Shown here: piece after piece, positions 33,672 through 59,390 of the stretch
Numbering within the stretch: the stretch's first letter is position 1
Layout: every line of letters starts with the position of its first letter
Notes under the pieces: model-generated
Told to the model about the DNA's origin: nothing
The model's input: the letters and a program-made list of their open reading frames with translations, nothing else
The model's database searches: none
DNA from: Basidiobolus meristosporus CBS 931.73
Lineage: Eukaryota > Fungi > Basidiobolomycota
DNA: 64,000 nucleotides
Assembly (NCBI GenBank): GCA_002104905.1
Contig: MCFE01000037.1
Coordinates: forward strand, 1 to 64,000
Direction of reading: 5' to 3'
Made by a program: the position numbers and the translations under genes

Positions 33672-33681
33672 CTTGCTTAAA

Positions 33682-39635: not shown

Positions 39636-40182
39636 ATGAAAACCGAATTTCCTTCGCTTCTCCAGTTCGGTATGGGTGTTGCCTACATCGTCGGATACGT
39701 GGGTGGTTCACATGTAGATATAGAGAGTTGAAGCGCCGTACTGATCGTTTCTTATTCCAGCAGAAACCTCAGCCCCAGCCCGTAGCCACTCTCAAAAACG
39801 AGATCTCCAACTGGATCTCCAACTTTATAGATCGCGCATACTTGGTGTTATCACCTGATCCATCAGCTCCGCGCCCCGTGAAAAAATCGCCAAGCACCCG
39901 CTCTGGTCACAGTAGAGCTAGGGAAACAATCGCTATCCCACATGTTCCCAGGAAGAAGAGACGCAGCCTCAATGAGGTTCAAGCGCAGCTGATCTACAAT
40001 ATCGAATTCAAGTGTAAGTGAGAATGAGCCAGTCATCGCCCATTCCTTTTCTAAACACCACCTCGGTATCAGGGCAAACAAAGCAATACCTGCTCAATTG
40101 GGGGTTTGATGGAAGAATGATCTTGCCCCCGTCGCTTCAGCCGATTCCCAGCCCCAGGGCCTTCATACTCAATCACCGTTAA
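39636..40182 (+). CDS. Hypothetical ~150-aa protein, 3 predicted exons
   Basis: Can be spliced with GT-AG introns to MKTEFPSLLQFGMGVAYIVGYVGGSH|QKPQPQ...RKKRRSLNEVQAQLIYNIEFK|WQTKQYLLNWGFDG...*. No family recognised. Confidence 0.4.
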
Positions 40183-41373
40183 GCTTGCTGATCATTTCAT
40201 TTCAACGCTGTTCGGGCGGTTACACAATTGGCTCCAAACCATAGAGATATCACCCTCACGCTTTATTACATATTTATGTGACATGACCACTCTCACCTTC
40301 TAATTCACACGTTTTCAAGTTGACCTTGTACTCGCATTTCCCACTATAGTTACATTGGATAGATACAATGATACTACTGATTATCGCTCCATTCGAACTA
40401 CGCTTACGATAAATATCGGAAGAACAGTGCTTAATTCAAAGAGTGACTTTCATCACTTGCCGGGATCCTGAAGCTGGGAATCCTAGTTGATTTTTGCCAT
40501 TCCTATTAGTCTAGGCCATGCTCATGACTAATGATTCCAGGCTAAGCTTGCCCGGATTGAGGAATAATTAATAGAGCTTTCAGAGTTCTTCAAAAGATTT
40601 TGACGTTATAGCTCGCAGGCATGAAGTGTGACCTGATAAGACTAATCGAGGCAATTGACTTGGTAATTGAAAAGTAACTCTATATCTCCAAACTCGCCCA
40701 TCATGATGATGAATTAGGACTTCCCCGACAGAACTGAGGCCGAGATTACAATATACAGTAACATTGATGTATAAGCCACACCAAATATATGTAAACATGA
40801 TATACGTAATCAGCAACTCCACGTTTATAAGACAAAATAGGAAGTGGCCGCTCTTTGGAAGTACTAGCGGAACTCGAAGAATTCTCCATATCGAGTACGG
40901 GGAAGAATTAATTTATTTAGACTAAATACCAACATACTAATTCCAAAATGAATATAGAAATGATCATCCGAAAATTTAAAGTTGGGTAATACCGAGCCAC
41001 TGCCGGAAAGGGCGATGAAAGCGGAGTAAATTGTGGTACAAAACGACTAATTCTATGTAACCACTCAAAATGCTCATCTTAATGCCTGAGCGAAAAAATT
41101 GATCGAAGCCGAAAAAGCTGTCACTGGTAACCATAAGCGTAACAGTTCCATGGAACCTATAGAAAATAATATATTTGGCTAAATTTGTCTGCCAAACGGA
41201 GTAGTAATTGCTTCAACACAAGCCTGAATGTGATACCAGACTACAACCAACGATTGGTAGATTACAGTCTGCGAAATATCATAACATGAATGCCAGAAAT
41301 GATTCAAAGACTTGGAAGAAGTATAAATATGATCCATTTCATGTAAAGCAAATCAGTTCTCTCAATTAACATT

Positions 41374-43059
41374 ATGGTTGCAATTAAATTACTATCCGCC
41401 GTTTCTCTCCTCGCCGCCACTTCCATGGCTTGGGTTTGGCCCTTGCCTGAGAAGATGGAAATCGGTGAGAGCATCCTGACCGTCAGACATGGCTTCGATA
41501 TCGACATCGAGGCGAAGTCCGGAAGAGACATCCTGCGCAGGGCTGTCAAGCGCTACAAAAAGATCATCTTCAACACTGGCGAGTTCGGTGACTTGTTGCA
41601 CCCAGTCACCAAAACTGTGTTCCCCACCCCTACTCCCAACGTGCCGATCCACGAGCCCATCCCCGAGGCCAAGACCACTCGCATCAAGGGTCTTGTCATC
41701 AAGGTCAAGGGGAAGAACACGAAACTGAACCTTGACACCGACGAGTCATACACTCTTGATGTCCCAGCTGATGGCTCACGCGCTGTCATTGAGGCAGAGA
41801 GTGTGTACGGAGCTCTCCGTGGTTTGGAGTCCTTCTCTCAACTCGTTCACTGGAGCAGTGATGTCAACCAACACCGCATCCCCATGGCCCCAGTCAAGAT
41901 CGAGGACAAGCCTGCCTTCCCCCATCGTGGTTTCCTCATCGATACCTCTCGTAACTACCTCCCTGTTGACGACATCAAGCGCATCTTGGATGGCATGTCC
42001 TACAACAAGCTCAACATCTTCCATTGGCACGTCATTGACCAGCACAGCTTCCCCCTCATGACCAAGACTTACCCTGAGCTGGCCATCCACGGAGCCTACA
42101 CCAAGAAGTGGATCTATGATGAGGATGATGTCCGTGAGATTGTCCGCTATGCCAAGGACAGAGCCATCCGTGTGATTCCTGAGTTCGATATTCCAGGCCA
42201 TGCTTACTCCTGGGGTCTGGCTATGCCTGACATCGTCAACTGCATGAACATGCAGCCCGATTGGGACACCTATGCCGCCGAGCCCAACAGCGGACAACTG
42301 GACATCATCAACCCCAAGACTGATGAGGTTGTCCAGAACTTCCTCAAGGAAGTCGCCCAATGGTTCGATGACGACTTCATCCACATCGGTGGTGACGAGG
42401 TCAACATGAAGTGTTGGGAGATCACTCCAGGATACCCCGAGTATCTTGAGAAGCACAACAAGACCATGGAGGATGTGCTCTCCGACTTCGTCATCAAGAC
42501 CCACAAATGGGTCCGTGAGAACAACAAGACCCCCATCACCTGGCAAGAGGCCCTCACCAGTCACAACATCTCCATGGAGAAGGATGTTGCCGTCCAAGTA
42601 TGGCTCAGCCCTGAGGATGCTATTGATGTTGTCCGTGCTGGACACAGAGTGATTTCATCCAGCTATGAAAGATGGTATCTTGACTGCGGTCACGGTGGCT
42701 GGATCAGTGACAACGAAGGCAACTCGTGGTGCGATCCCTTCAAGAGCTGGCAAAAGGCCTACAACTACGACATCACAGCCAACATGACTGCTGAGGAGGC
42801 CAAGCTGGTTATTGGCGGTGAGGCTCCTGCCTGGGCCGAACAAATCGACCCCATGAACATTCACCAAACCTTGTGGCCACGTGGTGCAGCTGTTGCCGAG
42901 GTTCTCTGGTCCGGCATCAAGCTTGAGGACGGCACCTACCGCAAGACCGGTGATGTGTTCCCACGTATTCATGAGCAAAGAGCACGCATGGTTGACCGTG
43001 GTCTTCCTGCCGAGCCTTTGCAACCTTTGTGGTGTGCCCGCAACCCCAGAAATTGCTAA
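41374..43059 (+). CDS. Secreted GH20 beta-N-acetylhexosaminidase, copy 1 (allotype A)
   Basis: Signal peptide, HRGFLIDTSRNY, catalytic HIGGDE, WYLDCGHGGW, GGEAPAWAEQ. TATAAATA at 41322. Confidence 0.97.
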   Translation: MVAIKLLSAVSLLAATSMAWVWPLPEKMEIGESILTVRHGFDIDIEAKSGRDILRRAVKRYKKIIFNTGEFGDLLHPVTKTVFPTPTPNVPIHEPIPEAKTTRIKGLVIKVKGKNTKLNLDTDESYTLDVPADGSRAVIEAESVYGALRGLESFSQLVHWSSDVNQHRIPMAPVKIEDKPAFPHRGFLIDTSRNYLPVDDIKRILDGMSYNKLNIFHWHVIDQHSFPLMTKTYPELAIHGAYTKKWIYDEDDVREIVRYAKDRAIRVIPEFDIPGHAYSWGLAMPDIVNCMNMQPDWDTYAAEPNSGQLDIINPKTDEVVQNFLKEVAQWFDDDFIHIGGDEVNMKCWEITPGYPEYLEKHNKTMEDVLSDFVIKTHKWVRENNKTPITWQEALTSHNISMEKDVAVQVWLSPEDAIDVVRAGHRVISSSYERWYLDCGHGGWISDNEGNSWCDPFKSWQKAYNYDITANMTAEEAKLVIGGEAPAWAEQIDPMNIHQTLWPRGAAVAEVLWSGIKLEDGTYRKTGDVFPRIHEQRARMVDRGLPAEPLQPLWCARNPRNC

Positions 43060-43659
43060 ATATTATATCCTAACCTTGATTAGGGGCTTTCAGTACAATG
43101 CTCGTGTAGTACTCCCCTAGTTTCGTTTTGTATTCACATTGACTTGATATTTCTATTACGATTATATATAAATTCCATTCTTTACTGAAATCAGATTGAC
43201 GACCGTAAACTTGAAAAGCTCTGTTCTCAAGATACATAGAGTATACAGTGCACTCAAATATGTGAATCATGAAACATGAAATATACTCTTGAGACTAATC
43301 GCTATGGACTCCAACTGGATGAGAATCAAGCTGCTTGTATATATCACAGTTAATTTCTATTTTTGCAAGTGTAGCTAGTGTAACCAAGTTTGTCGGTGAT
43401 CCAAACTACGTCGAATTCGGAACGATTGTCAAAATAGACATATTTTTTGACCAATACGCCCTGGATGTTCGTTGCGACGAACTCGGAAAGGAAGTGATTT
43501 CTATTTCGGGAAGTAAGCGACTGATCAGCTGATTTTTAGAGTAGGGTGTAATTTTCCCGAATTAGTTATATTACGTTGCTCCAGATACTTCATTTCAATG
43601 GTCAGATCGGTATAAATATGGAGCTCAGTCCTAGGTGGTAATCAAAAGTTCTCATTTCA

Positions 43660-45345
43660 ATGGTTGCCATTAAGCTTCTCTCCGCCGTCTCACTATTCGC
43701 CGCCACTTCCATGGCTTGGGTTTGGCCCTTGCCTGAGAAGATGGAAATCGGTGAGAGCATCCTGACCGTTAGACATGGCTTCGATATCGACATCGAGGCT
43801 AAGTCCGGAAGAGATATCCTGCGCAGGGCTGTCAAGCGCTACAAGAAGATCATCTTCAACACTGGTGAATATGGTGATCTACTGCACCCAGTCACCAAAA
43901 CTGTGTTCCCCACCCCTACTCCCAACGTGCCGATCCACGAGCCCATCCCCGAGGCCAAGACCACCCGCATCAAGGGTCTTGTCATCAGAGTCAATGGTAA
44001 GAACACTGACTTGAACATCGAGACCGATGAGTCCTACAAACTTGACGTCCCAGCTGATGGCTCAGAGGCTGTCATCGAGGCCGAGACCGTGTACGGAGCT
44101 CTGCGTGGTTTGGAGTCCTTCTCTCAACTTGTTCACTGGAGCAGTGATGTCAACCAACACCGCATCCCCATGGCCCCAGTCAAGATCGAGGACAAGCCTG
44201 CCTTCCCCCATCGTGGTTTCCTCATCGATACCTCTCGTAACTACCTCCCTATCGCTGACATCAAGCGCATCTTGGATGGCATGTCCTACAACAAGCTCAA
44301 CATCTTCCATTGGCACGTCATTGACCAGCACAGCTTCCCCCTCATGACCAAGACCTACCCTGAGCTGGCCATCCACGGAGCCTACACCAAGAAGTGGATC
44401 TACGATGAGGATGATGTCCGTGAGATTGTCCGCTATGCCAAGGACAGAGCCATCCGTGTGATTCCTGAGTTCGATATTCCAGGCCATGCTTACTCCTGGG
44501 GTCTGGCTATGCCCGACATCGTCAACTGCATGAACATGCAGCCCGACTGGGACACCTATGCCGCCGAGCCCAACAGCGGTCAACTGGACATCATCAACCC
44601 CAAGACTGATGAGGTTGTCCAGAACTTCCTCAAGGAAGTCGCCCAATGGTTCGATGACGACTTCATCCACATCGGTGGTGACGAGGTCAACATGAAGTGT
44701 TGGGAGATCACTCCAGGATACCCCGAGTATCTTGAGAAGCACAACAAGACCATGGAGGATGTGCTCTCCGACTTCGTCATCAAGACCCACAACTGGGTCC
44801 GCGACAACAAGAAGACCCCCATCACCTGGCAAGAGGCCCTCACCAGTCACAACATCTCCATGGAGAAGGATGTTGCCGTCCAAGTATGGCTCAGCCCTGC
44901 GGATGCTATAGATGTTGTCCGTGCTGGACACAGAGTGATTTCATCCAGCTATGAAAGATGGTATCTTGACTGCGGTCATGGTGGCTGGATCAGTGACAAC
45001 GAAGGCAACTCATGGTGTGACCCACACAAGAGCTGGCAAAAGGCATACAACTACGACATCACAGCCAACATGACTGCTGAGGAGGCCAAGCTGGTTATTG
45101 GCGGTGAGGCTCCTGCCTGGGCCGAACAAATCGATACCACCAACATTGATCGTACCTTGTGGCCACGTGGTGCAGCTGTTGCCGAGGTTCTCTGGTCCGG
45201 CATCAAGCTTGAGGATGGCACCTACCGCAAGACCGGTGATGTGTTCCCACGTATTCATGAGCAAAGAGCACGCATGGTTGATCGTGGCATTCGTGCTGTA
45301 CCTTTGCAACCTTTGTGGTGTGCTCGTAACCCACGCAATTGCTAA
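43660..45345 (+). CDS. Secreted GH20 beta-N-acetylhexosaminidase, copy 2 (allotype B)
   Basis: Same motifs as copy 1, 561 aa. TATAAATA at 43611. Confidence 0.97.
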   Translation: MVAIKLLSAVSLFAATSMAWVWPLPEKMEIGESILTVRHGFDIDIEAKSGRDILRRAVKRYKKIIFNTGEYGDLLHPVTKTVFPTPTPNVPIHEPIPEAKTTRIKGLVIRVNGKNTDLNIETDESYKLDVPADGSEAVIEAETVYGALRGLESFSQLVHWSSDVNQHRIPMAPVKIEDKPAFPHRGFLIDTSRNYLPIADIKRILDGMSYNKLNIFHWHVIDQHSFPLMTKTYPELAIHGAYTKKWIYDEDDVREIVRYAKDRAIRVIPEFDIPGHAYSWGLAMPDIVNCMNMQPDWDTYAAEPNSGQLDIINPKTDEVVQNFLKEVAQWFDDDFIHIGGDEVNMKCWEITPGYPEYLEKHNKTMEDVLSDFVIKTHNWVRDNKKTPITWQEALTSHNISMEKDVAVQVWLSPADAIDVVRAGHRVISSSYERWYLDCGHGGWISDNEGNSWCDPHKSWQKAYNYDITANMTAEEAKLVIGGEAPAWAEQIDTTNIDRTLWPRGAAVAEVLWSGIKLEDGTYRKTGDVFPRIHEQRARMVDRGIRAVPLQPLWCARNPRNC

Positions 45346-45951
45346 GATATGTAGCAAGATTATATCATTTGTAAAAGTTACATATTTTGGTTATATATAC
45401 TTTGAATCATCTGAGCTCAGACTGAAAATAAATAATTGGTGTTATTAAAAATAACTTGTATATTTCTTACAATTACTCTAAATGAAATTATTGACCCGGA
45501 GCACTAATATATAATATATTTCTGGGCCGTGTAACCATTACGCTGAAGTATTGTGCCTTACAAAGAATGTAACCAATATTTAGAATTCCGATCGTGACTT
45601 GTTCGTGGGAAAATTTGATTTTGATCGGTATCGTACATTATGATTAATCAATCATTCATCGATTTCTTCCATTCGGATCATTCACCAAACTAGGAATTCA
45701 TTAATATATTCTTTACAGAAGACCACCTCCGTTCAAATCCAGTTTGATGAAATTATGCCTTCTCCACAAATCGCAACATTATTTTATTTCCCAGGCCTAG
45801 ATGTCGCTTTTTGGGAATCGATTTGGCCTCCGCTACTTGAGGCGATTGAAAAGAATGGATGGAAAATCCAGGGCAGCTGGACACTTTCAATTTAATATCC
45901 ACTGAGCACTATAAATATGAGGGTCAGCATTGAAATGTGAAAACAATATCA

Positions 45952-47640
45952 ATGGTCGCAATTAAATTATTATCCGCTGTCTCACTCCTCGCCGCCACTT
46001 CCATGGCTTGGGTTTGGCCCTTGCCTGAGAAGATGGAAATCGGTGAGAGCATCCTGACCGTTAGACATGGCTTCGATATCGACATCGAGGCGAAGTCCGG
46101 AAGAGACATCCTGCGCAGGGCTGTCAAGCGCTACAAGAAGATCATCTTCAACACTGGTGAATATGGTGATCTGTTGCACCCAGTCACCAAAACTGTGTTC
46201 CCCACCCCTACCCCCAATGTGCCAATCCACGAGCCCATCCCCGAGGCCAAGACCACCCGCATCAAGGGTCTTGTCATCAGAGTCAATGGTAAGAACACTG
46301 ACTTGAACATCGAGACCGATGAGTCCTACAAACTTGATGTCCCAGCTGATGGCTCAGAGGCCGTCATCGAGGCCGAGACCGTGTACGGAGCTCTCCGTGG
46401 TTTGGAGTCCTTCTCTCAACTCGTTCACTGGAGCAGTGATGTCAACCAACACCGCATCCCCATGGCTCCAGTCAAGATTGAGGACAAGCCTGCCTTCCCC
46501 CATCGTGGTTTCCTCATCGATACCTCTCGTAACTACCTCCCCATCGCTGACGACATCAAGCGCATCTTGGATGGCATGTCCTACAACAAGCTCAACATCT
46601 TCCACTGGCACGTCATTGACCAGCACAGCTTCCCACTCATGACCAAGACCTACCCTGAGCTGGCCATCCACGGAGCCTACACCAAGAAGTGGATCTACGA
46701 TGAGGATGATGTCCGTGAGATTGTCCGCTATGCCAAGGACAGAGCCATCCGTGTGATTCCTGAGTTCGATATTCCAGGCCATGCTTACTCCTGGGGTCTG
46801 GCTATGCCCGACATCGTCAACTGCATGAACATGCAGCCTGACTGGGACACCTATGCCGCCGAGCCCAACAGCGGTCAACTGGACATCATCAACCCCAAGA
46901 CTGATGAGGTTGTCCAGAACTTCCTCAAGGAAGTCGCCCAATGGTTCGATGATGACTTCATCCACATCGGTGGTGACGAGGTCAACATGAAGTGTTGGGA
47001 GATCACTCCAGGATACCCCGAGTATCTTGAGAAGCACAACAAGACCATGGAGGATGTGCTTCTCGACTTCGTCATCAAGACCCACAACTGGGTCCGCGAC
47101 AACAAGAAGATCCCCATCACCTGGCAAGAGGCCCTCACCAGTCACAACATCTCCATGGAGAAGGACGTTGCCGTCCAGGTGTGGCTCAGCCCTGCGGATG
47201 CTATTGATGTTGTTCGTGCTGGACACAGAGTGATTTCATCCAGCTATGAAAGATGGTATCTTGACTGCGGCCACGGTGGCTGGATCAGTGACAACGAAGG
47301 TAACTCATGGTGTGACCCACACAAGAGCTGGCAAAAGGCATACAACTACGACATCACAGCCAACATGACTGCTGAGGAGGCCAAGCTGGTTATTGGCGGT
47401 GAGGCTCCTGCCTGGGCCGAACAAATCGATACCACCAATATCGATCGTACCTTGTGGCCACGTGGTGCAGCTGTTGCCGAGGTTCTCTGGTCCGGCATCA
47501 AGCTTGAGGATGGCACCTACCGCAAGACCGGTGATGTGTTCCCACGTATTCATGAGCAAAGAGCACGTATGGTTGATCGTGGCATTCGTGCTGTACCTTT
47601 GCAACCTTTGTGGTGTGCTCGTAACCCACGCAATTGCTAA
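45952..47640 (+). CDS. Secreted GH20 beta-N-acetylhexosaminidase, copy 3 (allotype B, 562 aa)
   Basis: Same motifs, with one extra Asp (PIADDIK). TATAAATA at 45910. Confidence 0.97.
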   Translation: MVAIKLLSAVSLLAATSMAWVWPLPEKMEIGESILTVRHGFDIDIEAKSGRDILRRAVKRYKKIIFNTGEYGDLLHPVTKTVFPTPTPNVPIHEPIPEAKTTRIKGLVIRVNGKNTDLNIETDESYKLDVPADGSEAVIEAETVYGALRGLESFSQLVHWSSDVNQHRIPMAPVKIEDKPAFPHRGFLIDTSRNYLPIADDIKRILDGMSYNKLNIFHWHVIDQHSFPLMTKTYPELAIHGAYTKKWIYDEDDVREIVRYAKDRAIRVIPEFDIPGHAYSWGLAMPDIVNCMNMQPDWDTYAAEPNSGQLDIINPKTDEVVQNFLKEVAQWFDDDFIHIGGDEVNMKCWEITPGYPEYLEKHNKTMEDVLLDFVIKTHNWVRDNKKIPITWQEALTSHNISMEKDVAVQVWLSPADAIDVVRAGHRVISSSYERWYLDCGHGGWISDNEGNSWCDPHKSWQKAYNYDITANMTAEEAKLVIGGEAPAWAEQIDTTNIDRTLWPRGAAVAEVLWSGIKLEDGTYRKTGDVFPRIHEQRARMVDRGIRAVPLQPLWCARNPRNC

Positions 47641-48435
47641 AGATACAAGATGGGTTTTGCACATCTAATTGATGGCCCTCATTTTTACATTTGATGTTAA
47701 CAATTTCTTCATTCGATATCTGTAATAAAACCAACTTATTTATGTAATTGATTTGGCAATAGTATCTATGCATTATGTCAATCTACAATGATATTTCCGT
47801 TAGACTAAGAATCTTAGACACGTTTGCCATAAAAGGTATCTCTTTAAATTGCGGAGAACGGAGCACGGAAAATATTCCTCAAATGTATGGGTATCAAATT
47901 GAATTTAAGAGGTTTCTAGAAGTGTAACGAGTCTGGTTGGAAAAGATTTTCACACCATACGAGTGATGGAATGGCACCAATGGCTGTCGCACACAATAAT
48001 TCTAGGTTAGAGAGTACTACGCCACAAAAAGACCACATGGATAGCATTGGGAACTGAAATGGGTCATATGTCGCTTCAGCAGGAATACAAAATCACGTAT
48101 TAACTAAAAAAAAATTCCCCTCTACTAAAGTAAAATGGTATAACTAGGCTTAAGGCCATGCCTTATCCAAATCAAATGTGGAGAACAACATGTGGGAATG
48201 CTACTTGAAATTTTCAGTTAAATTGATAGCTAAATTTAATGATTATATAGTTCGCGATCGCTACACTAGTTTAAATTTAGTGAATTCCTTTGAACCCCGA
48301 CTGTTTATTGGCTGTATCACAGGTCATCAGAAGAATTAGGTCTCCACAAACTGATTCCTAGAAATGAAGAACATATAAATAAGTCAGTTATTGACGTTGT
48401 CTACAAATCACAAGAATCAAAATCCATTTACAATA

Positions 48436-50121
48436 ATGGTAGCAATCAAACTCCTCTCCGCTGTCTCACTCCTGGCTGCTTCTTCCATGGCTTGGGTTTG
48501 GCCCTTGCCTGAGAAGATGGAAATCGGTGAGAGCATCCTGACAGTCAGACATGGCTTCGATATCGACATCGAGGCTAAGTCTGGAAGAGATATCCTACGC
48601 AGGGCTGTCAAGCGCTACAAGAAGATCATCTTCAACACTGGTGAATATGGTGATCTGTTGCACCCAGTCACCAAAACTGTGTTCCCCACCCCTACTCCCA
48701 ACGTGCCAATCCACGAGCCCATCCCCGAAGCCAAGACCACTCGCATCAAGGGTCTTGTCATCAGAGTCAATGGTGAGAACACTGACTTGAACATCGAGAC
48801 CGATGAGTCCTACAAACTTGACGTCCCAGCTGATGGCTCAGAGGCTGTCATCGAGGCCGAGACCGTGTACGGAGCTCTCCGTGGTTTGGAGTCCTTCTCT
48901 CAACTCGTTCACTGGAGCAGTGATGTCAACCAACACCGCATCCCCATGGCCCCAGTCAAGATCGAGGACAAGCCTGCCTTCCCCCATCGTGGTTTCCTCA
49001 TCGATACCTCTCGTAACTACCTCCCCATCGCTGACATCAAGCGCATCTTGGATGGCATGTCCTACAACAAGCTCAACATCTTCCACTGGCACGTCATCGA
49101 CCAGCACAGCTTCCCCCTCATGACCAAGACCTACCCTGAGCTGGCCATCCACGGAGCCTACACCAAGAAGTGGATCTACGACGAGGATGATGTCCGTGAG
49201 ATTGTCCGCTATGCCAAGGACAGAGCCATCCGTGTGATTCCTGAGTTCGATATTCCAGGCCATGCTTACTCCTGGGGTCTGGCTATGCCCGACATCGTCA
49301 ACTGCATGAACATGCAGCCTGACTGGGACACCTATGCCGCCGAGCCCAACAGCGGTCAACTGGACATCATCAACCCCAAGACTGATGAGGTTGTCCAGAA
49401 CTTCCTCAAGGAAGTCGCCCAATGGTTCGATGATGACTTCATCCACATCGGTGGTGACGAGGTCAACATGAAGTGTTGGGAGATCACTCCAGGATACCCC
49501 GAGTATCTTGAGAAGCACAACAAGACCATGGAGGATGTGCTCTCCGACTTCGTCATCAAGACCCACAACTGGGTCCGCGACAACAAGAAGATCCCCATCA
49601 CCTGGCAAGAGGCCCTCACCAGTCACAACATCTCCATGGAGAAGGATGTTGCCGTCCAGGTGTGGCTCAGCCCTGCGGATGCTATTGATGTTGTCCGTGC
49701 TGGACACAGAGTGATTTCATCCAGCTATGAAAGATGGTACCTTGACTGCGGTCACGGTGGCTGGATCAGTGACAACGAAGGCAACTCATGGTGTGACCCA
49801 CACAAGAGCTGGCAAAAGGCATACAACTATGACATCACAGCCAACATGACTGCTGAGGAGGCCAAGCTGGTTATTGGCGGTGAGGCTCCTGCCTGGGCCG
49901 AACAAATCGATATCACCAATATCGATCGTACCTTGTGGCCACGTGGTGCAGCTGTTGCCGAGGTTCTCTGGTCCGGCATCAAGCTTGAGGATGGCACCTA
50001 CCGCAAGACCGGTGATGTGTTCCCACGTATTCATGAGCAAAGAGCACGCATGGTTGATCGTGGCATTCGTGCTGTACCTTTGCAACCTTTGTGGTGTGCT
50101 CGTAATCCACGCAATTGCTAA
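48436..50121 (+). CDS. Secreted GH20 beta-N-acetylhexosaminidase, copy 4 (allotype B)
   Basis: Same motifs. TATAAATA at 48374. Confidence 0.97.
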   Translation: MVAIKLLSAVSLLAASSMAWVWPLPEKMEIGESILTVRHGFDIDIEAKSGRDILRRAVKRYKKIIFNTGEYGDLLHPVTKTVFPTPTPNVPIHEPIPEAKTTRIKGLVIRVNGENTDLNIETDESYKLDVPADGSEAVIEAETVYGALRGLESFSQLVHWSSDVNQHRIPMAPVKIEDKPAFPHRGFLIDTSRNYLPIADIKRILDGMSYNKLNIFHWHVIDQHSFPLMTKTYPELAIHGAYTKKWIYDEDDVREIVRYAKDRAIRVIPEFDIPGHAYSWGLAMPDIVNCMNMQPDWDTYAAEPNSGQLDIINPKTDEVVQNFLKEVAQWFDDDFIHIGGDEVNMKCWEITPGYPEYLEKHNKTMEDVLSDFVIKTHNWVRDNKKIPITWQEALTSHNISMEKDVAVQVWLSPADAIDVVRAGHRVISSSYERWYLDCGHGGWISDNEGNSWCDPHKSWQKAYNYDITANMTAEEAKLVIGGEAPAWAEQIDITNIDRTLWPRGAAVAEVLWSGIKLEDGTYRKTGDVFPRIHEQRARMVDRGIRAVPLQPLWCARNPRNC

Positions 50122-50845
50122 TATTGGATGAACAGTATAAGTTAAAAATCAATGATCTTGTGACAGCTTGCTGAATATTAATAAATATACCCCTTTTGTG
50201 TACTGTAATAACAGTTTCATTTGTTGTGGGTTCGAATATTGAAATTTACGCTAGTTATTTACGATAAATACATTTGCGGGTGATACGAAATGGTTCGGCA
50301 ATATAGAGTAAATCTCAAACCATTTTCGTTGAAATAATGTAAATTTCTAACTATAGGCGAAAAGATTTCCTTATATGATCTAATTACAGCTCGTGGTAGT
50401 AAAATCATCCTGATGCCTGGATTTTATATGCCATCCAACCAAGTAATAATGCTTATACCGTTTGAGATGAATGGTAACTATTAATTAATATCACCCCTCG
50501 AAAATTCTACAAATGAAGCAGTGTCATCCATTCTAGATTGGAGATTACCTTGACTAGAATGGTTAGAAAAAATCATCCAGGAAATTCTATTTCCCTTAAG
50601 AGTTGTGGCGGGCGCGATCATTTTCTCACTGCGAATAAATATATATACCATTTGAAACTCAGTGATGGAAAATAGACATATTGTTTTTTAGTACATTGCG
50701 CGTCGGACCTAGAATGACAAATGAAATATAGCCAAAGTATTTTGAGAAAAGTCAGCGAGTGGAGTAAGAATCTTCTTTTAGTGTAGAATTTCCCTATAAA
50801 TAGCGTACGGTATTGGTATGCATTTCGTACAAAAAATTCGATTCT

Positions 50846-52531
50846 ATGGTTGCGATCAAACTACTTTCTGCTGTCTCCCTCCTCGCCGCATCTTCCATGG
50901 CTTGGGTTTGGCCCTTGCCTGAGAAGATGGAAATCGGTGAGAGCATCCTGACAGTCAGAAATGGCTTCGATATCGACATTGAGGCTAAGTCTGGAAGAGA
51001 CATCCTGCGCAGGGCTGTCAAGCGCTACAAGAAGATCATCTTCAACACTGGCGAGTTCGGTGACTTGTTGCACCCAGTCACCAAAACTGTGTTCCCCACC
51101 CCCACCCCCAATGTGCCAATCCACGAGCCCATCCCCGAGGCCAAGACCACTCGCATCAAGGGTCTTGTCATCAGAGTCAATGGTGAGAACACTGACTTGA
51201 ACATCGAGACCGATGAGTCCTACAAACTTGACGTCCCAGCTGATGGCTCAGAGGCTGTCATCGAGGCCGAGACCGTGTACGGAGCTCTCCGTGGTTTGGA
51301 GTCCTTCTCTCAACTCGTTCACTGGAGCAGTGATGTCAACCAACACCGCATCCCCATGGCCCCAGTCAAGATCGAGGACAAGCCTGCCTTCCCCCATCGT
51401 GGTTTCCTCATCGATACCTCTCGTAACTACCTCCCTGTTGACGACATCAAGCGCATCTTGGATGGCATGTCCTACAACAAGCTCAACATCTTCCACTGGC
51501 ACGTCATTGACCAGCACAGCTTCCCCCTCATGACCAAGACCTACCCTGAGCTGGCCATCCACGGAGCCTACACCAAGAAGTGGATCTACGATGAGGATGA
51601 TGTCCGTGAGATTGTCCGCTATGCCAAGGACAGAGCCATCCGTGTGATTCCTGAGTTCGATATTCCAGGCCATGCTTACTCCTGGGGTCTGGCTATGCCC
51701 GACATCGTCAACTGCATGAACATGCAGCCCGACTGGGACACCTATGCCGCCGAGCCCAACAGCGGACAACTGGACATCATCAACCCCAAGACTGATGAGG
51801 TTGTCCAGAACTTCCTCAAGGAAGTCGCCCAATGGTTCGATGACGACTTCATCCACATCGGTGGTGACGAGGTCAACATGAAGTGTTGGGAGATCACTCC
51901 AGGATACCCCGAGTATCTTGAGAAGCACAACAAGACCATGGAGGATGTGCTCTCCGACTTCGTCATCAAGACCCACAAATGGGTCCGTGAGAACAACAAG
52001 ACCCCCATCACCTGGCAAGAGGCCCTCACCAATCACAACATCTCCATGGAGAAGGACGTTGCCGTCCAGGTGTGGCTCAGCCCTGAGGATGCTATTGATG
52101 TTGTCCGTGCTGGACACAGAGTGATTTCATCCAGCTATGAAAGATGGTATCTTGACTGCGGTCACGGTGGCTGGATTAGTGACAACGAAGGCAACTCGTG
52201 GTGCGATCCCTTCAAGAGCTGGCAAAAGGCATACAACTACGACATCACAGCCAACATGACTGCTGAGGAGGCCAAGCTGGTTATTGGCGGTGAGGCTCCT
52301 GCCTGGGCCGAACAAATCGACCCCATGAACATTCACCAAACCTTGTGGCCACGTGGTGCTGCTGTTGCCGAGGTTCTCTGGTCCGGTATCAAGCTTGAGG
52401 ATGGCACCTACCGCAAGACCGGTGATGTGTTCCCACGTATTCATGAGCAAAGAGCACGCATGGTTGACCGTGGTCTTCCTGCCGAACCTTTGCAACCTTT
52501 GTGGTGTGCACGCAACCCAAGAAACTGCTAA
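50846..52531 (+). CDS. Secreted GH20 beta-N-acetylhexosaminidase, copy 5 (allotype A)
   Basis: Same motifs. TATAAATA at 50795. Confidence 0.97.
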   Translation: MVAIKLLSAVSLLAASSMAWVWPLPEKMEIGESILTVRNGFDIDIEAKSGRDILRRAVKRYKKIIFNTGEFGDLLHPVTKTVFPTPTPNVPIHEPIPEAKTTRIKGLVIRVNGENTDLNIETDESYKLDVPADGSEAVIEAETVYGALRGLESFSQLVHWSSDVNQHRIPMAPVKIEDKPAFPHRGFLIDTSRNYLPVDDIKRILDGMSYNKLNIFHWHVIDQHSFPLMTKTYPELAIHGAYTKKWIYDEDDVREIVRYAKDRAIRVIPEFDIPGHAYSWGLAMPDIVNCMNMQPDWDTYAAEPNSGQLDIINPKTDEVVQNFLKEVAQWFDDDFIHIGGDEVNMKCWEITPGYPEYLEKHNKTMEDVLSDFVIKTHKWVRENNKTPITWQEALTNHNISMEKDVAVQVWLSPEDAIDVVRAGHRVISSSYERWYLDCGHGGWISDNEGNSWCDPFKSWQKAYNYDITANMTAEEAKLVIGGEAPAWAEQIDPMNIHQTLWPRGAAVAEVLWSGIKLEDGTYRKTGDVFPRIHEQRARMVDRGLPAEPLQPLWCARNPRNC

Positions 52532-53242
52532 AGGGCATACCAAGATAATTTTGATATAGTATTGACTAAATTTCATGTTGTAAAGGCACATAATAGCATT
52601 TCAATAAAATCAATGAATAGCATCAATGTAGTCCCATTTTTGAATTAAGTCCTATAAATCTGGATTTGCAACTTATTTAAACGAATGAATTGTGACCTCT
52701 AGAATCCAGAATAATATTATAATGGGAGAGGTAGCACCAAGGAGCCATTTTACTGCACCCGTTTGTTACACGGAGATTTAATGTGCACACTTCACTAATG
52801 CAAGGACAGATTGTATAATCAGCTAGGATGAAGATAATGGCGCCACAGATACACGTTACTAACGCCTTCATTTCTCGAGAATTTCGAAGGAATGACATAT
52901 CAAATACTTGGAAATTCATTAGCGGCCTCAAAATCAGTAGGATAGTTCTCATTATGGTACTGTAACGTGAAAGCAATATTTTAATTTAACTCGAAATTGA
53001 TGCCAATACGATGCTTTTACCATTGGTAATATTACCATTGAAAGTTGTAGCCACATAACTGGCCTTTCCTTTTCATTCTACCCTGTTACTTATGGTTTGA
53101 TTGATTGTAAACTTCGTGCGTAAAAGAATTTACTATTGCGAATTTTCCAGCGTCCCGCGAAAGAACTGACAATATAAATACTCACGACCATGCCCAATAG
53201 TTAAAGCATACCCCATAACAGAAAACACCAACAGTAACATAA

Positions 53243-54928
53243 ATGGTGGCAATCAAGCTTCTCTCTGCTGTCTCCCTCCTCGCCGCATCTTCCATGGCTT
53301 GGGTTTGGCCCTTGCCTGAGAAGATGGAAATCGGTGAGAGCATCCTGACCGTTAGACATGGCTTCGATATCGATATCGAGGCTAAGTCCGGAAGAGATAT
53401 CCTGCGCAGGGCTGTCAAGCGCTACAAGAAGATCATCTTCAACACTGGCGAGTTCGGTGACTTGTTGCACCCAGTCACCAAAACTGTGTTCCCCACCCCC
53501 ACCCCCAATGTGCCAATCCACGAGCCCATCCCCGAGGCCAAGACCACTCGCATCAAGGGTCTTGTCATCAGAGTCAATGGTGAGAACACTGACTTGAACA
53601 TCGAGACCGATGAGTCCTACAAACTTGATGTCCCAGCTGATGGCTCAGAGGCTGTCATCGAGGCCGAGACCGTGTACGGAGCTCTCCGTGGTTTGGAGTC
53701 CTTCTCTCAACTCGTTCACTGGAGCAGTGATGTCAACCAACACCGCATCCCCATGGCTCCGGTCAAGATCGAGGACAAGCCTGCCTTCCCCCATCGTGGT
53801 TTCCTCATCGATACCTCTCGTAACTACCTCCCCATCGCTGACATCAAGCGCATCTTGGATGGCATGTCCTACAACAAGCTCAACATCTTCCACTGGCACG
53901 TCATCGACCAGCACAGCTTCCCCCTCATGACCAAGACCTACCCTGAGCTGGCCATCCACGGAGCCTACACCAAGAAGTGGATCTACGATGAGGATGATGT
54001 CCGTGAGATTGTCCGCTATGCCAAGGACAGAGCCATCCGTGTGATTCCTGAGTTCGATATTCCAGGCCATGCTTACTCCTGGGGTCTGGCTATGCCTGAC
54101 ATCGTCAACTGCATGAACATGCAGCCCGATTGGGACACCTATGCCGCCGAGCCCAACAGCGGTCAACTGGACATCATCAACCCCAAGACTGATGAGGTTG
54201 TCCAGAACTTCCTCAAGGAAGTCGCCCAATGGTTCGATGACGACTTCATCCACATCGGTGGTGACGAGGTCAACATGAAGTGTTGGGAGATCACTCCAGG
54301 ATACCCCGAGTATCTTGAGAAGCACAACAAGACCATGGAGGATGTGCTCTCCGACTTCGTCATCAAGACCCACAAATGGGTCCGTGAGAACAACAAGACC
54401 CCCATCACCTGGCAAGAGGCCCTCACCAATCACAACATCTCCATGGAGAAGGACGTTGCCGTCCAGGTGTGGCTCAGCCCTGAGGATGCTATTGATGTTG
54501 TCCGTGCTGGACACAGAGTGATTTCATCCAGCTATGAAAGATGGTATCTTGACTGCGGTCACGGTGGCTGGATTAGTGACAACGAAGGCAACTCGTGGTG
54601 CGATCCCTTCAAGAGCTGGCAAAAGGCATACAACTACGACATCACAGCCAACATGACTGCTGAGGAGGCCAAGCTGGTTATTGGCGGTGAGGCTCCTGCC
54701 TGGGCCGAACAAATCGACCCCATGAACATTCACCAAACCTTGTGGCCACGTGGTGCTGCTGTTGCCGAGGTTCTCTGGTCCGGCATCAAGCTTGAGGACG
54801 GCACCTACCGCAAGACCGGTGATGTGTTCCCACGTATTCATGAGCAAAGAGCACGCATGGTTGACCGTGGTCTTCCTGCCGAGCCTTTGCAACCTTTGTG
54901 GTGTGCTCGCAACCCCAGAAACTGCTAA
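53243..54928 (+). CDS. Secreted GH20 beta-N-acetylhexosaminidase, copy 6 (allotype A with B-type PIADIK)
   Basis: Same motifs. TATAAATA at 53173. Confidence 0.97.
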   Translation: MVAIKLLSAVSLLAASSMAWVWPLPEKMEIGESILTVRHGFDIDIEAKSGRDILRRAVKRYKKIIFNTGEFGDLLHPVTKTVFPTPTPNVPIHEPIPEAKTTRIKGLVIRVNGENTDLNIETDESYKLDVPADGSEAVIEAETVYGALRGLESFSQLVHWSSDVNQHRIPMAPVKIEDKPAFPHRGFLIDTSRNYLPIADIKRILDGMSYNKLNIFHWHVIDQHSFPLMTKTYPELAIHGAYTKKWIYDEDDVREIVRYAKDRAIRVIPEFDIPGHAYSWGLAMPDIVNCMNMQPDWDTYAAEPNSGQLDIINPKTDEVVQNFLKEVAQWFDDDFIHIGGDEVNMKCWEITPGYPEYLEKHNKTMEDVLSDFVIKTHKWVRENNKTPITWQEALTNHNISMEKDVAVQVWLSPEDAIDVVRAGHRVISSSYERWYLDCGHGGWISDNEGNSWCDPFKSWQKAYNYDITANMTAEEAKLVIGGEAPAWAEQIDPMNIHQTLWPRGAAVAEVLWSGIKLEDGTYRKTGDVFPRIHEQRARMVDRGLPAEPLQPLWCARNPRNC

Positions 54929-55536
54929 ATGGCTTACCCTAAATGCTTCGACCAGGTTATGTTGAAGATGAAAGCCGAATAAGCATCATGATTTTTGAAG
55001 TTTTTTAATAATTAAGTTATAAATCAACAATAACGGCAATGATATAAATAAACACATTTCCCTACTAATTGCAGACGTGTGAATATTTCCAGACAATCTT
55101 TTCTATTGAAAACCTTTCCCCTGGGATGTCGAGAGTATCAAATTCATATGGTGGCGTAATATGGTTAGTTTTTATTCACTCACTGTGATGATCCCAGATA
55201 AATTTAGTTAAAATCCTTGAGCATTTCATCCTTAATGGTTATATAGCGTAAGTTACAGTGATTAATACTTGCTATTTATAGCTTGATTAAGTCCCAACAA
55301 ATCCAAGTGATTTTCTATAAATTCGGTGAGCTTAAACTGCATTTGGATAGAATGGAAATTGTGGAGGTCTTCAGGCTGGAGTAGGATGTTGTTTTTAATC
55401 TGAATTACCTCCATTCATAGTCACATCGAGCAGCCATATATAGCACCTGGACCTTCCTAGATTCCAGCACGCATTCCGACTCCTTATAAATAATGCAACC
55501 AGGATTCTGTCTAGGAACAATTCATTTCCTCACTCG

Positions 55537-57222
55537 ATGGTTGCTATTAAACTACTCTCCGCTGTTTCGCTCCTTGCCGCCTCTTCCATGGCTTGGGTTT
55601 GGCCCTTGCCTGAGAAGATGGAAATCGGTGAGAGCATCCTGACCGTTAGACATGGCTTCGATATCGACATTGAGGCTAAGTCCGGAAGAGACATCCTGCG
55701 CAGGGCGGTCAAGCGCTACAAGAAGATCATCTTCAACACTGGTGAATATGGTGATCTGTTGCACCCAGTCACCAAAACTGTGTTCCCCACCCCTACTCCC
55801 AATGTGCCAATCCATGAGCCCATCCCCGAAGCCAAGACCACTCGCATCAAGGGTCTCGTCATCAGAGTCAATGGCGAGAACACTGACTTGAACATCGAGA
55901 CCGATGAGTCCTACAAACTTGATGTCCCAGCTGATGGCTCAGAGGCTGTCATCGAGGCCGAGACCGTGTACGGAGCTCTCCGTGGTTTGGAGTCCTTCTC
56001 TCAACTCGTTCACTGGAGCAGTGATGTCAACCAACACCGCATCCCCATGGCTCCGGTCAAGATCGAGGACAAGCCTGCCTTCCCCCATCGTGGTTTCCTC
56101 ATCGATACCTCCCGTAACTACCTCCCCATCGCTGACATCAAGCGCATCTTGGATGGCATGTCCTACAACAAGCTCAACATCTTCCACTGGCACGTCATCG
56201 ACCAGCACAGCTTCCCCCTCATGACCAAGACCTACCCTGAGCTGGCCATCCACGGAGCCTACACCAAGAAGTGGATCTACGATGAGGATGATGTCCGTGA
56301 GATTGTCCGCTATGCCAAGGACAGAGCCATCCGTGTGATTCCTGAGTTCGATATTCCAGGCCATGCTTACTCCTGGGGTCTGGCTATGCCCGACATCGTC
56401 AACTGCATGAACATGCAGCCCGACTGGGACACCTATGCCGCCGAGCCCAACAGCGGTCAACTGGACATCATCAACCCCAAGACTGATGAGGTTGTCCAGA
56501 ACTTCCTCAAGGAAGTCGCCCAATGGTTCGATGACGACTTCATCCACATCGGTGGTGACGAGGTCAACATGAAGTGTTGGGAGATCACTCCAGGATACCC
56601 CGAGTATCTTGAGAAGCACAACAAGACCATGGAGGATGTGCTCTCCGACTTCGTCATCAAGACCCACAACTGGGTCCGCGACAACAAGAAGATCCCCATC
56701 ACCTGGCAAGAAGCCCTCACCAGTCACAACATCTCCATGGAGAAGGATGTTGCCGTCCAGGTGTGGCTCAGCCCTGCGGATGCTATAGATGTTGTCCGTG
56801 CTGGACACAGAGTGATTTCATCCAGCTATGAAAGATGGTATCTTGACTGCGGTCACGGTGGCTGGATCAGTGATAACGAAGGCAACTCATGGTGTGACCC
56901 ACACAAGAGCTGGCAAAAGGCATACAACTACGATATCACAGCCAACATGACTGCTGAGGAGGCCAAGCTGGTTATTGGCGGTGAGGCTCCTGCCTGGGCC
57001 GAACAAATCGATACCACCAACATTGATCGTACCTTGTGGCCACGTGGCGCTGCTGTTGCCGAGGTTCTCTGGTCCGGCATCAAGCTTGAGGATGGCACCT
57101 ACCGCAAGACCGGTGATGTGTTCCCACGTATTCATGAGCAAAGAGCACGTATGGTTGACCGTGGCATTCGTGCTGTACCTTTGCAACCTTTGTGGTGTGC
57201 TCGTAACCCACGCAATTGCTAA
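55537..57222 (+). CDS. Secreted GH20 beta-N-acetylhexosaminidase, copy 7 (allotype B)
   Basis: Same motifs. TATAAATA at 55485. Confidence 0.97.
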   Translation: MVAIKLLSAVSLLAASSMAWVWPLPEKMEIGESILTVRHGFDIDIEAKSGRDILRRAVKRYKKIIFNTGEYGDLLHPVTKTVFPTPTPNVPIHEPIPEAKTTRIKGLVIRVNGENTDLNIETDESYKLDVPADGSEAVIEAETVYGALRGLESFSQLVHWSSDVNQHRIPMAPVKIEDKPAFPHRGFLIDTSRNYLPIADIKRILDGMSYNKLNIFHWHVIDQHSFPLMTKTYPELAIHGAYTKKWIYDEDDVREIVRYAKDRAIRVIPEFDIPGHAYSWGLAMPDIVNCMNMQPDWDTYAAEPNSGQLDIINPKTDEVVQNFLKEVAQWFDDDFIHIGGDEVNMKCWEITPGYPEYLEKHNKTMEDVLSDFVIKTHNWVRDNKKIPITWQEALTSHNISMEKDVAVQVWLSPADAIDVVRAGHRVISSSYERWYLDCGHGGWISDNEGNSWCDPHKSWQKAYNYDITANMTAEEAKLVIGGEAPAWAEQIDTTNIDRTLWPRGAAVAEVLWSGIKLEDGTYRKTGDVFPRIHEQRARMVDRGIRAVPLQPLWCARNPRNC

Positions 57223-57671
57223 GCATGATATTCTCGGGCTAAATATCAATTACCATCTTCATAAAAAGAATCATTAATTATATGACCACTCATTCTTGAG
57301 TGACTCAATATTGACTATAAGGCACTATTTTTGTAATAAATGAGTCGGTTCATTTTCAGTGAAATTATTATACGTGGGTTTTTGGGATTAAAGAGTCTGA
57401 TTCTCACACCAGGCGTTATCTTCCCAGTCTTCACAGAAGAGATACAACATGCTTAGCTTTGTTTTCAATCACTATCTACGAGCTAGAATACGGATACTAT
57501 AGAGTTTCTATATTGTGACCAGCCAGCCAAGGATTTAATATTCATTTTGAGGTAGCACTCAGTAGTAAAAGTGTAGAAGAGAAATATAATACAGATAGCG
57601 GTAGGTTCATGGTAACATTACTTTCTAATCAGTACTTTACAGTAGGTCCGACGGTTGCTTCCTATCCGTGA

Positions 57672-59390
57672 CTAGTGTCGGATATTCGGAACCAGGGAAG
57701 CAGTGAATAGAATGGCCAGAAGATTGATGAACAGGAAGATGCAGAACGTATAAGAGTTAAGCTTTTCGTTAAGCACGGGGGTGAGCAACCCAACTGAGAA
57801 TGTGCATCTATTGATGATCCAACTGGGTTAGTTCTGGTCAATACTTCCAGTAGAGTGCAAACTTACATCCAGCCGATGTTATTAGCCATCGAAACCACCG
57901 CACTGACAGCTGAGGTTGGCATCATTTCTGGGATCATGACTACGGTGATTGGGCCAAGACCGATGGCAAAGGAGCCTACGAATATGATGGCTTTAACGGT
58001 TCATTAGTTTCGAAACAACTACCAGAGGTACAATTATAATACACACCTCCAGTAACAACTGCAGCATCAATAGAATTCAACGAGGACACCACCAAAATTA
58101 TCGACGCAATTACCATTCCCACTTCGCTGATCAGGAGTAGGGTCTTCCTGCCAGCCCGTTCAATTACCATGGCAGATATGAATGTCATCATCATGTTCAT
58201 GGCTGCGATACCGACGGTGACCAGCTCCGCCTTTTGAGGGCCGAAAACTCGTTCGAAAATGGACGTTGAGTAATAGACGATGCCGATAATCCCCGAAAGC
58301 GGTTGAAAAGCGAAGAGTGTGATCCCAATCAAAGCCGCTTTTCGTAGCTTGTTGTCACGCAGGATCTGGAAGATGTTCAAAGGCTTCACGGTCTCAATAA
58401 CCGTTATGCCTGTTTCAAGGCTAACCCCTATCTTACTCATTCTAAAGGTATTTGAAGGGCTTTTGGGACTTTTGCAACTCACGGAGCTTCTAGGGCTCAT
58501 GGGATCTTTTGGTAACACCGGGCTCGCGCATGAGTTCCTGGAGTAAAGCGATGCGCGGGAAGGTGTCGGTACCTTTTGCGAATCCAGCATTTCCTGGAAC
58601 TCTTGCTCAATGTGGTATCCACGGCGTAATCTCTCCAACGAGGCCCTTGCCCTTGCCATATCCCCTTTAAGAATTAGGAATCGAGGTGTCTCTTTACAAA
58701 AAGGCAATAGACACAGCTGTAGCAAAGCTGGACCAATGGTTCCACCCATCAACCATCTCCATCCAGGGATGCCGATGAATGGGATGCAGAGTCCCTGAGA
58801 AACAAATATTCCCAGCATCTGGGAAAGCTCCAAGCCGATCCCCAATGACCCTCTTAATTTTTCAGTAGAGATCTCAGCTAGATAGGCTGGCACTGCCACA
58901 CCAACCACGCCACTAGCAACTCCTACCAACACCCGGCCAATAGTAAAGATCGGTATGGAGGTGCTCATGGACAACATCAAGCCACCAATTAGAAAGAGAA
59001 TGTTATTCCAGAAGAGGGTTTTCTTGCGGCCGTATTGAGCCGTCAGGCTACCAGCTAAAGTGCTACCTATTAGGCCACCGATTGCAAAAATCCCCACCAC
59101 GAATCCCCTGATGGTGTGCAGATAACAGCGTTAACACAGATTCTCAAACAGATATGGACACACACTTACCAGGTCCATGGGGTCATGGGCAGACAATCGG
59201 GAAAGTAAGAGGCGGAGTTGCTGTTGGGGACGCAATTTATAATTGTCCCCTGAGAAATATTTGGCACGCCTGCGTTGTAACCGGCATTGAACCCACCCAG
59301 GATGGCGGTGAAGGCGCAAAACAATACGTATCCAGAGGCCCTTTGCTCTCTAGAATCCAACAATTCATTGGGGACTGACATGCTTTTCAT
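57672..59390 (-). CDS. MFS sugar-porter (GLUT-like) transporter, 4 exons
   Basis: GGFNAGYNAGVPN, VGIFAIGGLIGS, YGRKK, GRVLVG, YLAEISTEKLRGSLG, ETPRFL, IERAGRKTLLL and GSFAIGLGPI. The predicted C-terminus VPNIRH* is unusually short. Confidence 0.9.

Follow-up and report, generated by a model that had tools for sequence, protein, structure and literature searches.

The analyzed window is a stretch of 64,000 nucleotides (nt) of contig MCFE01000037.1 from Basidiobolus meristosporus CBS 931.73 (assembly GCA_002104905.1), and it carries a tandem array of seven GH20 genes at positions 41374–57222. A preliminary description of this stretch had listed them as intact, intronless, head-to-tail genes of 561–562 amino acids (aa) with a period of ~2.3–2.5 kilobases (kb), and the open reading frames (ORFs), the Pfam matches and the spacing all agree with it. 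In detail, the seven ORFs run uninterrupted from ATG to stop without introns, they are all located on the + strand, and the start-to-start distance between copies is 2286–2484 nt. The locus is probably a tandem array of old age whose seven genes are functional and encode secreted GH20 enzymes, with gene conversion acting among them and a high exo-hexosaminidase output. The copies fall into two protein allotypes (A and B, see below), and the elements of the array are the following:

41374–43059, + strand: GH20 copy 1, 561 aa, allotype A
43660–45345, + strand: GH20 copy 2, 561 aa, allotype B
45952–47640, + strand: GH20 copy 3, 562 aa, allotype B, with an additional Asp codon at nt 598–600 of the coding sequence (CDS)
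48436–50121, + strand: GH20 copy 4, 561 aa, allotype B
50846–52531, + strand: GH20 copy 5, 561 aa, allotype A
53243–54928, + strand: GH20 copy 6, 561 aa, allotype A
55537–57222, + strand: GH20 copy 7, 561 aa, allotype B
41322–41329, + strand: TATAAATA box of copy 1; the same octamer is found at 43611, 45910, 48374, 50795, 53173 and 55485 (copies 2–7)
43060–43659, 45346–45951, 47641–48435, 50122–50845, 52532–53242 and 54929–55536, no strand: the six inter-copy spacers, 600–795 nt

The seven genes and their promoters

Both Glycohydro_20b2 and Glyco_hydro_20 are matched in 7/7 copies along the whole profile length (Pfam, E ~1e-100), with E = 9e-100 for the GH20 catalytic domain (PF00728) and E = 4e-23 for the GH20b-type N-terminal domain (PF14845). 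The proteins are mutually at least 95% identical and show ~40–45% identity to other fungal members. HIGGDE (residue 337/338), WYLD (434/435) and AWxE (486/487) occupy fixed positions in every copy, as had been claimed for HIGGDE and W-x-E, so that the catalytic Asp-Glu pair and the substrate-binding Tyr (WYLD) and Trp/Glu (W-x-E) of the GH20 family are present in all seven; six cysteines are also retained in each copy. Of the solved structures, Aspergillus oryzae hexosaminidase 5OAR is the nearest (E = 3e-94), its GGDE aligning with that of the window copies; insect OfHex1 and human HexA/B are also near. Trichoderma NAG1/NAG2, Metarhizium MaNAG1/2 and A. oryzae Hex share with the window copies the two-domain architecture and the motifs, and have the signal peptide that is predicted for the latter. 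Judged by these sequence features, the window genes are intact NAG1/Hex-type GH20 beta-N-acetylhexosaminidases.

The N-termini read MVAIKLLSAVSLLAA(T/S)SMA|W, continuing as WVWPLP, and are of the signal-peptide type: they contain a basic residue and a hydrophobic core of 11 residues (mean Kyte-Doolittle ~2.0), and S-M-A precedes W20. Their amino acids are conserved while the synonymous sites of the same segment are saturated (synonymous divergence, dS, of 1.27), and a signal peptide is predicted for all copies from the conserved hydrophobic N-terminus, in line with the preliminary description. The public models of copies 1, 3, 4, 5 and 6 (5/7) begin at Met18, omitting the predicted signal peptide, and the model of copy 7 is the 561-aa form. 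Met1 is considered the real start because the first 17 codons are conserved at the protein level despite saturated synonymous change. Since the public models start at Met18, secretome and CAZyme surveys would undercount the secreted GH20 enzymes of this genome.

For the TATA box TATAAATA, the window has 10 occurrences where 1.6 are expected. Seven of them sit 42–70 nt ahead of the GH20 ATGs, one for each copy as previously noticed. This box is the sole element common to all seven upstream regions. When 150 nt on either side of the copies were aligned, this octamer was the only thing in common, and the search for further common promoter motifs returned only the weak hexamers AAATCA and ATTTTC, nothing convincing. 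The homology among copies is confined to the stretch from ATG to stop codon: between any two of the six spacers and the two outer flanks there is no match longer than 32 nt (blastn, 7-nt words). The inter-copy spacers contain no tRNA or Rfam elements.

The array is also characterized by its codon usage. Third-position C and A amount to 0.45 and 0.09 in the GH20 genes, close to the 0.47 and 0.08 of RPS22 with which the C-ending bias had been compared before, versus 0.25–0.32 and 0.22–0.33 in Dis3, PSF1 and the transporter downstream of the array. This ribosomal-protein-like bias and the seven unrelated promoters fit the earlier proposal of a dosage- and regulation-amplified locus, and seven unrelated promoters would allow differential regulation of the copies. 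An antisense ORF of 289–290 aa lies within every GH20 copy (41776–42645, − strand, in copy 1); these ORFs match no Pfam family and in all likelihood merely result from the preference of the sense strand for codons ending in C.

Assembly and transcription of the array

An array of copies 94–98% alike may raise the suspicion of an assembly artefact, in which a long-read assembler expanded fewer real copies or stacked alleles in tandem, and the second GH20 array of the same assembly (see below) indeed contains many 1-bp indels typical of long-read consensus errors. Such an artefact has practically no probability here. Every junction is unique sequence, and because the six spacers and both flanks are unique, the assembler could not make copies by repeat expansion. 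Each GH20 copy has private substitutions, and the public annotation also lists seven genes.

The same is indicated by contigs of two public runs, X1 and X2, which behave as DNA (even depth over intergenic DNA and the transporter) and possibly derive from the same strain as the assembly, their independence being incomplete. They match three junctions without mismatch, i.e., 53000–53293 (end of the spacer between copies 5 and 6 into copy 6), 54857–55611 (end of copy 6, the whole spacer between copies 6 and 7 and the start of copy 7) and 57194–58999 (from the end of copy 7 through the downstream spacer into the transporter). Word depth is 154–220 at the unique junctions and totals ~1100 (~six times) for the shared words of the mid-CDS; Logan word depths are not copy numbers, and the agreement with six to seven copies is only a rough one. 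These short-read-like contigs thus bridge the tested unique junctions at single-copy depth. The loose contig ends in X1 and X2 belong to the second array.

Transcription was traced in a further run, X3, which consists of 27 Mb of contigs and leaves the spacers uncovered. One of its contigs joins 57990 to 58047 within the transporter, omitting 56 nt (57991–58046, GT..AG, − strand). X3 is read as RNA because of this splice joint and the absence of spacer cover. Its GH20 contigs carry the substitutions private to copy 3 at CDS nt 528, 681 and 1317 and extend 64 nt into the 3′ flank of copy 3 itself; at CDS nt 516, however, they differ from copy 3. Since this segment is represented by a second variant contig as well, at least two copies are transcribed, copy 3 being one of them. 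The transporter, a sugar porter, is transcribed in X3 as well.

Divergence, probable gene conversion and allotypes

Nucleotide identity of the CDS among the seven copies is 93.7–98.3%. The pairwise dS of the whole CDS is 0.08–0.24, and the ratios of nonsynonymous divergence (dN) to dS, ranging from 0.006 to 0.13, show purifying selection on all seven genes. Along the CDS, dS follows a U-shaped profile. It is 1.27 at nt 1–48, falls to 0.15 at nt 49–150 and to 0.05 at nt 601–1200 (0.04–0.05 at nt 750–1200), and rises again towards the 3′ end, reaching 0.25 around nt 1400 and 0.81 over the final 36 nt. The partitions defined by the 153 polymorphic sites are mutually incompatible and mosaic-like: the four-gamete test fails for 44% of the informative site pairs, adjacent sites are more compatible than permuted ones (PHI-type permutation, p = 0.0005), and significantly long identical runs are common to several copy pairs. 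Two features of concerted evolution are thus present, namely, a mosaic (recombination) signal and a rise of divergence towards both ends of the homologous block.

Two other causes of the low dS were considered and ruled out. Constraint by codon bias does not account for it, as the same gene reaches a dS of ~1.1 between species and the profile is U-shaped, not flat. The homogenization was not mediated by cDNA (retro-homogenization) either, as the sequence close to the untranslated regions and the first 16 codons are not homogenized.

The comparison with Basidiobolus ranarum (GCA_040143965.1) provides the third feature. On its contig L004, the end of one copy is separated from the beginning of the following one by an 849-nt spacer, which has TATAAATA at −77. 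L004 has ~81% nucleotide identity to all seven window copies alike, and its dS to every one of them is 1.0–1.2, as compared with 0.11 between its own two copies. The maximum-likelihood tree unites the seven window copies in a single clade (100/100) whose nearest branches are B. ranarum sequences, and the second array of B. meristosporus groups with its own B. ranarum sequences. Within-species paralogues are closer to each other than between-species orthologues. Concerted evolution is supported because a tandem family exists in both species, its paralogues cluster by species, and the gene ends have diverged to the level found between species.

The similarity of the copies could also be a sign of youth, i.e., of a recent birth-and-death amplification without gene conversion. 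The whole-CDS dS of merely 0.08–0.24 and the monophyly of the copies within the species agree with it, and promoter-proximal parts of the second-array spacers are 73–88% alike, so unit duplication does occur in the family. However, neutral DNA at a dS of 0.1–0.2 would align easily, and the spacers and flanks show no similarity. Moreover, the dS of the gene ends (1.27 and 0.81) is about the between-species value, the site patterns are mosaic with four-gamete failures, and the same tandem arrangement is found in B. ranarum. Recent amplification is therefore already largely refuted and very improbable.

The divergence pattern gives strong support to an old array that would have been homogenized by gene conversion restricted to the CDS. 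The tandem duplications would be about as old as the split from B. ranarum, or older, and repeated conversion among the copies would keep their CDS 94–98% identical. Conversion tracts would require homology on both sides, rarely reaching the gene ends and never the diverged flanks; conversion would be low at the edges because tracts must begin and finish inside homologous DNA. The outcome would be synonymous saturation in the first 16 and the last 12 codons, and almost none in the middle of the gene.

The history of the array at its present position depends on the genes around it, which are the following:

35243–38230, − strand: Dis3/Rrp44 gene (Pfam)
38600–39181, + strand: PSF1/GINS gene, single-copy upstream neighbor of the array (Pfam)
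39728–40021, + strand: unannotated 97-aa ORF in the interval from PSF1 to the array, conserved in B. ranarum contig L007
57672–59390, − strand: sugar porter (Sugar_tr), JGI model P0132, 483 aa, with introns, convergent to the array

Contig L007 of B. ranarum (JASJQH010007637.1) is colinear with window positions 33676–59079, sharing RPS22, the GN3L gene, the ORF at 39728–40021 and the porter. The ORF has 77–85% similarity over ~40 aa to L007 (tblastx) and no Pfam family matched it. The porter of L007 is about equally similar to P0132 and to its B. meristosporus paralogue P0133. L007, which has the flanks without the array, may correspond to a paralogous segment; alternatively, the array may have come to lie here only once the two species had separated. 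Regarding synteny in a relative, which the preliminary description had proposed to compare, the tandem family is thus found again on L004, and the colinear flanks of L007 are without it.

Four points weigh against an old array of seven functional secreted enzymes. L007 lacks Dis3 and PSF1 and any GH20 copy between the colinear genes. The contigs of B. ranarum are short, and they match the array as a family, not copy by copy or spacer by spacer. The evidence of transcription comes from one run of inferred RNA and concerns copy 3 and one or more further copies. Finally, the signal peptide of the GH20 proteins is a prediction judged from sequence features and conservation.

CDS-limited gene conversion between paralogues is known from the ribosomal-protein and TEF genes of yeast and from the globin and opsin pairs of primates. 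These cases likewise show within-species similarity, mosaic sites, homology up to the CDS borders and divergence at the edges. Unlike them, the window array has seven members, encodes a predicted secreted glycosidase, belongs to an early-diverging fungus and combines interleaved allotypes with an apparently unconverted tract in an edge copy. It is an unusually clean case of concerted evolution, which could be used for studies of conversion tract length and selection in fungi.

A run from another study (X4, 2025) was compared with window positions 53000–58999. Its GH20 CDS are 91–97% like those of the window copies, and it contains no spacer or transporter sequence of this segment at 90% likeness or more. 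The source of X4 is probably a related Basidiobolus, and the comparison shows the coding sequence as the conserved part across strains or species too.

The two protein allotypes, A (copies 1, 5 and 6) and B (copies 2, 3, 4 and 7), are interleaved in the array in the order A B B B A A B. They are separated by 33 fixed nucleotide differences, and the allotype blocks comprise codons 69–74, 379–385, 415, 452–457, 493–499, 544–548 and 557–560. At the protein level, the residues that tell the allotypes apart are 71, 379–385, 415, 457, 494–499 and 545–548. The fixed differences are 16 nonsynonymous to 17 synonymous, versus 15 to 80 for the other polymorphisms (Fisher p = 3e-4), where the former count follows the correction of one two-step Arg codon and the latter leaves out the private tract of copy 1. 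Allotype A has an additional N-glycosylation sequon, NKT, at residue 384. Several blocks are located a few residues past the conserved Trp of VQVW and past AWAE, which makes a position near the active site plausible. The allotypes persist despite the proposed conversion and may differ in function. A tentative extension of this proposal, with less than even chances, is that the allotypes (~12 residues) are held apart by selection against conversion and represent differently tuned or regulated hexosaminidases along the way from insect remains through the gut to dung, under seven unrelated promoters and within a GH20 complement that may exceed by far all others known in fungi. If true, the allotype system would be a natural setting in which selection against conversion can be measured.

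Copy 1, the edge copy, has a private tract at CDS nt 329–429 (window 41702–41802) with 23–24 differences from the other copies. This tract looks like an unconverted relic, because its residues match those of B. ranarum and of the second array, i.e., they are outgroup-like. A recent conversion from the second array was considered as its origin and ruled out, as 31–35 of 105 nt differ from the copies of that array.

GH20 complement, function and neighboring genes

The second GH20 array is located on contig MCFE01000088.1 at ~118000–141000 and consists of ten head-to-tail intronless copies of 562 codons, with the same codon bias as the window array. Its copies are 95–98% alike, with the exception of one 87% copy and of one truncated copy (~92%, internal deletion), and in comparison with the window copies they show ~72% protein identity and a dS of 0.8–0.9. 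Some promoter-proximal parts of its spacers are 73–88% alike, and the 5′ ends are homogenized. In the assembly, 1-bp indels are found in 7/10 copies, nearly all beside an identical base, and they look like long-read consensus errors, not decay. A Polysacc_deac_1 (chitin-deacetylase-like) gene flanks the array upstream, and there is no transporter beside it. The B. ranarum counterpart is contig L005 (dN 0.11). The two arrays of B. meristosporus therefore differ in copy number (ten versus seven), in their spacers (partly alike versus unalignable) and in the adjoining transporter (none versus the porter).

Altogether, at least 19 GH20 loci are present in B. meristosporus, i.e., the seven and the ten copies of the arrays and two single genes (P0005 and P0011). 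Among 15 filamentous fungi surveyed, most have one NAG1 and one NAG2 orthologue, and the usual number is ~2–3 GH20 genes per filamentous fungus (PMC6415606), which agrees with the earlier statement that most fungi have only a few. Trichoderma, Metarhizium and Aspergillus carry one to three unlinked genes (PMC6415606), in contrast to the intronless arrays of seven and ten in Basidiobolus. The arrays are not described in the Basidiobolus GH20 and hexosaminidase literature that was searched. The evolutionary mechanism and the genome-wide scale are new here; GH20 expansion and concerted evolution themselves are known kinds of phenomena.

Secreted fungal GH20 enzymes split chitobiose and chito-oligomers to N-acetylglucosamine (GlcNAc), and GH20 enzymes of this type act on many terminal beta-linked N-acetylhexosamine (HexNAc) substrates. 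Basidiobolus is associated with insect remains, insectivore guts and dung, and reportedly, as the title of one paper has it, it is an amphibian gastrointestinal symbiont. Against this background knowledge, the arthropod- or fungus-feeding lifestyle of the preliminary description is plausible as far as a chitin-rich niche of Basidiobolus is concerned.

The array would provide a high and perhaps differently regulated output of extracellular exo-enzyme, which would split chitobiose, chito-oligomers or other terminal beta-GlcNAc or beta-N-acetylgalactosamine residues to free monosaccharide. Such an output would suit life on the insect remains that are present in the guts of insectivores and in dung. 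The amplification and the ribosomal-protein-like codon bias are best read as a high-capacity harvest of GlcNAc from chitin fragments. This would offer a concrete genomic basis for the exploitation of chitin-rich insect remains by an early-diverging fungus of gut and dung, not through a novel enzyme but because the final, extracellular step of chitin breakdown is massively amplified.

The enzymes could have a different job, namely, the attack on host or microbial glycans (mucin, N-glycans and peptidoglycan fragments) or the remodeling and autolysis of the fungus' own wall. It is in general knowledge that the family acts on many terminal beta-HexNAc substrates, and the nearest solved relatives include human HexA/B and insect OfHex1. 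The host fungus lives in vertebrate guts, and no chitinase or GlcNAc catabolic gene is linked to the array in the window. On the other hand, the predicted signal peptide and the ribosomal-protein-like codon bias suit a bulk nutritional enzyme better than wall remodeling, and a chitin-deacetylase-like gene adjoins the second array, with glycan foraging still compatible. In Trichoderma, the orthologous pair NAG1/NAG2 permits growth on chitin: on chitin and on chitobiose the fungus cannot grow unless it has NAG1 or NAG2, one of which is enough in the case of chitin, and the dimer is cleaved extracellularly before uptake (PMC4950302). A different job is thus rather unlikely, and the harvest of GlcNAc from chitin fragments remains the best reading.

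A sugar porter does follow the array convergently, as the preliminary description had stated, and a coupling of the array to uptake had been suggested from it. The porter, P0132, is a Sugar_tr protein (E = 6e-83) with at least five porter paralogues in B. meristosporus. Outside the genus, it is closest to the “general substrate transporters” of other early-diverging fungi; animal GLUT1/4-like carriers come next, at ~29–30% identity. The segment is duplicated, and the paralogue P0133 (77%) likewise has the kinase and the small genes as neighbors; the porter is therefore assigned to the conserved backbone and not to the array.

If the coupling were true, the porter would import the GlcNAc or glucosamine released by the array and be co-regulated with it. 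Only 449 nt separate it from copy 7, and its transcripts, too, are present in the RNA-like run X3. GlcNAc uptake in ascomycetes proceeds mainly via NGT1, another carrier of the major facilitator superfamily (MFS); NGT1 mutants still grow to some extent, which suggests that part of the GlcNAc can enter via hexose carriers (PMC4950302). P0132 is set apart from NGT1 by description and general knowledge, not by sequence comparison. On the contrary, the porter belongs to a GLUT-like Sugar_tr family with at least five paralogues, it is without the codon bias of the array, the second array has no adjoining transporter, and the segment of P0132 is a duplicated backbone shared with P0133. Without a counterpart at the second array and without the array codon bias, the coupling lacks positive evidence beyond adjacency; it is improbable, and the adjacent porter is probably just a neighbor.

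The gene content of the window points in the same direction. Pfam scans of the large ORFs of the window returned no GlcNAc kinase, deacetylase or deaminase, no Ndt80-like regulator and no NGT1-type carrier, nor a linked chitinase gene. A GlcNAc utilization cluster (HXK/DAC/NAG and NGT1) is accordingly absent from the window in these scans. The ascomycete GlcNAc cluster with NGT1 (Candida albicans and Trichoderma reesei; PMC4950302) concerns the same pathway step and the same idea of physical linkage, but the window array is not of its type, as the linked carrier is GLUT-like and kinase, deacetylase, deaminase and NGT1 were not found in the window.

In Zoopagomycota-like genomes, the gene models P0018 (949 aa) and P0048 (763 aa) fuse an MFS_1-type transporter to GH20, with the GH20 domain in the C-terminal part of P0018. 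This suggests that GH20 is adjacent to a different transporter family elsewhere.

Upstream of the array stand RPS22, a GN3L-type gene, Dis3/Rrp44 and PSF1; its downstream neighbors are the convergent porter, a protein kinase and two genes that belong to no family. Elsewhere, the window contains housekeeping genes, a retroelement fragment and a DUF3472/chitin-binding protein. The retroelement fragment is an ORF at 1663–2889 (− strand) with a zinc knuckle and a retroviral-type aspartyl protease, i.e., a gag/protease fragment. The other ORF, at 6742–8145 (+ strand) and ~33 kb upstream of the array, encodes DUF3472 (E = 7e-37) followed by a Chitin_bind_1 module; its product is a further chitin-related secreted protein on the same contig as the array.

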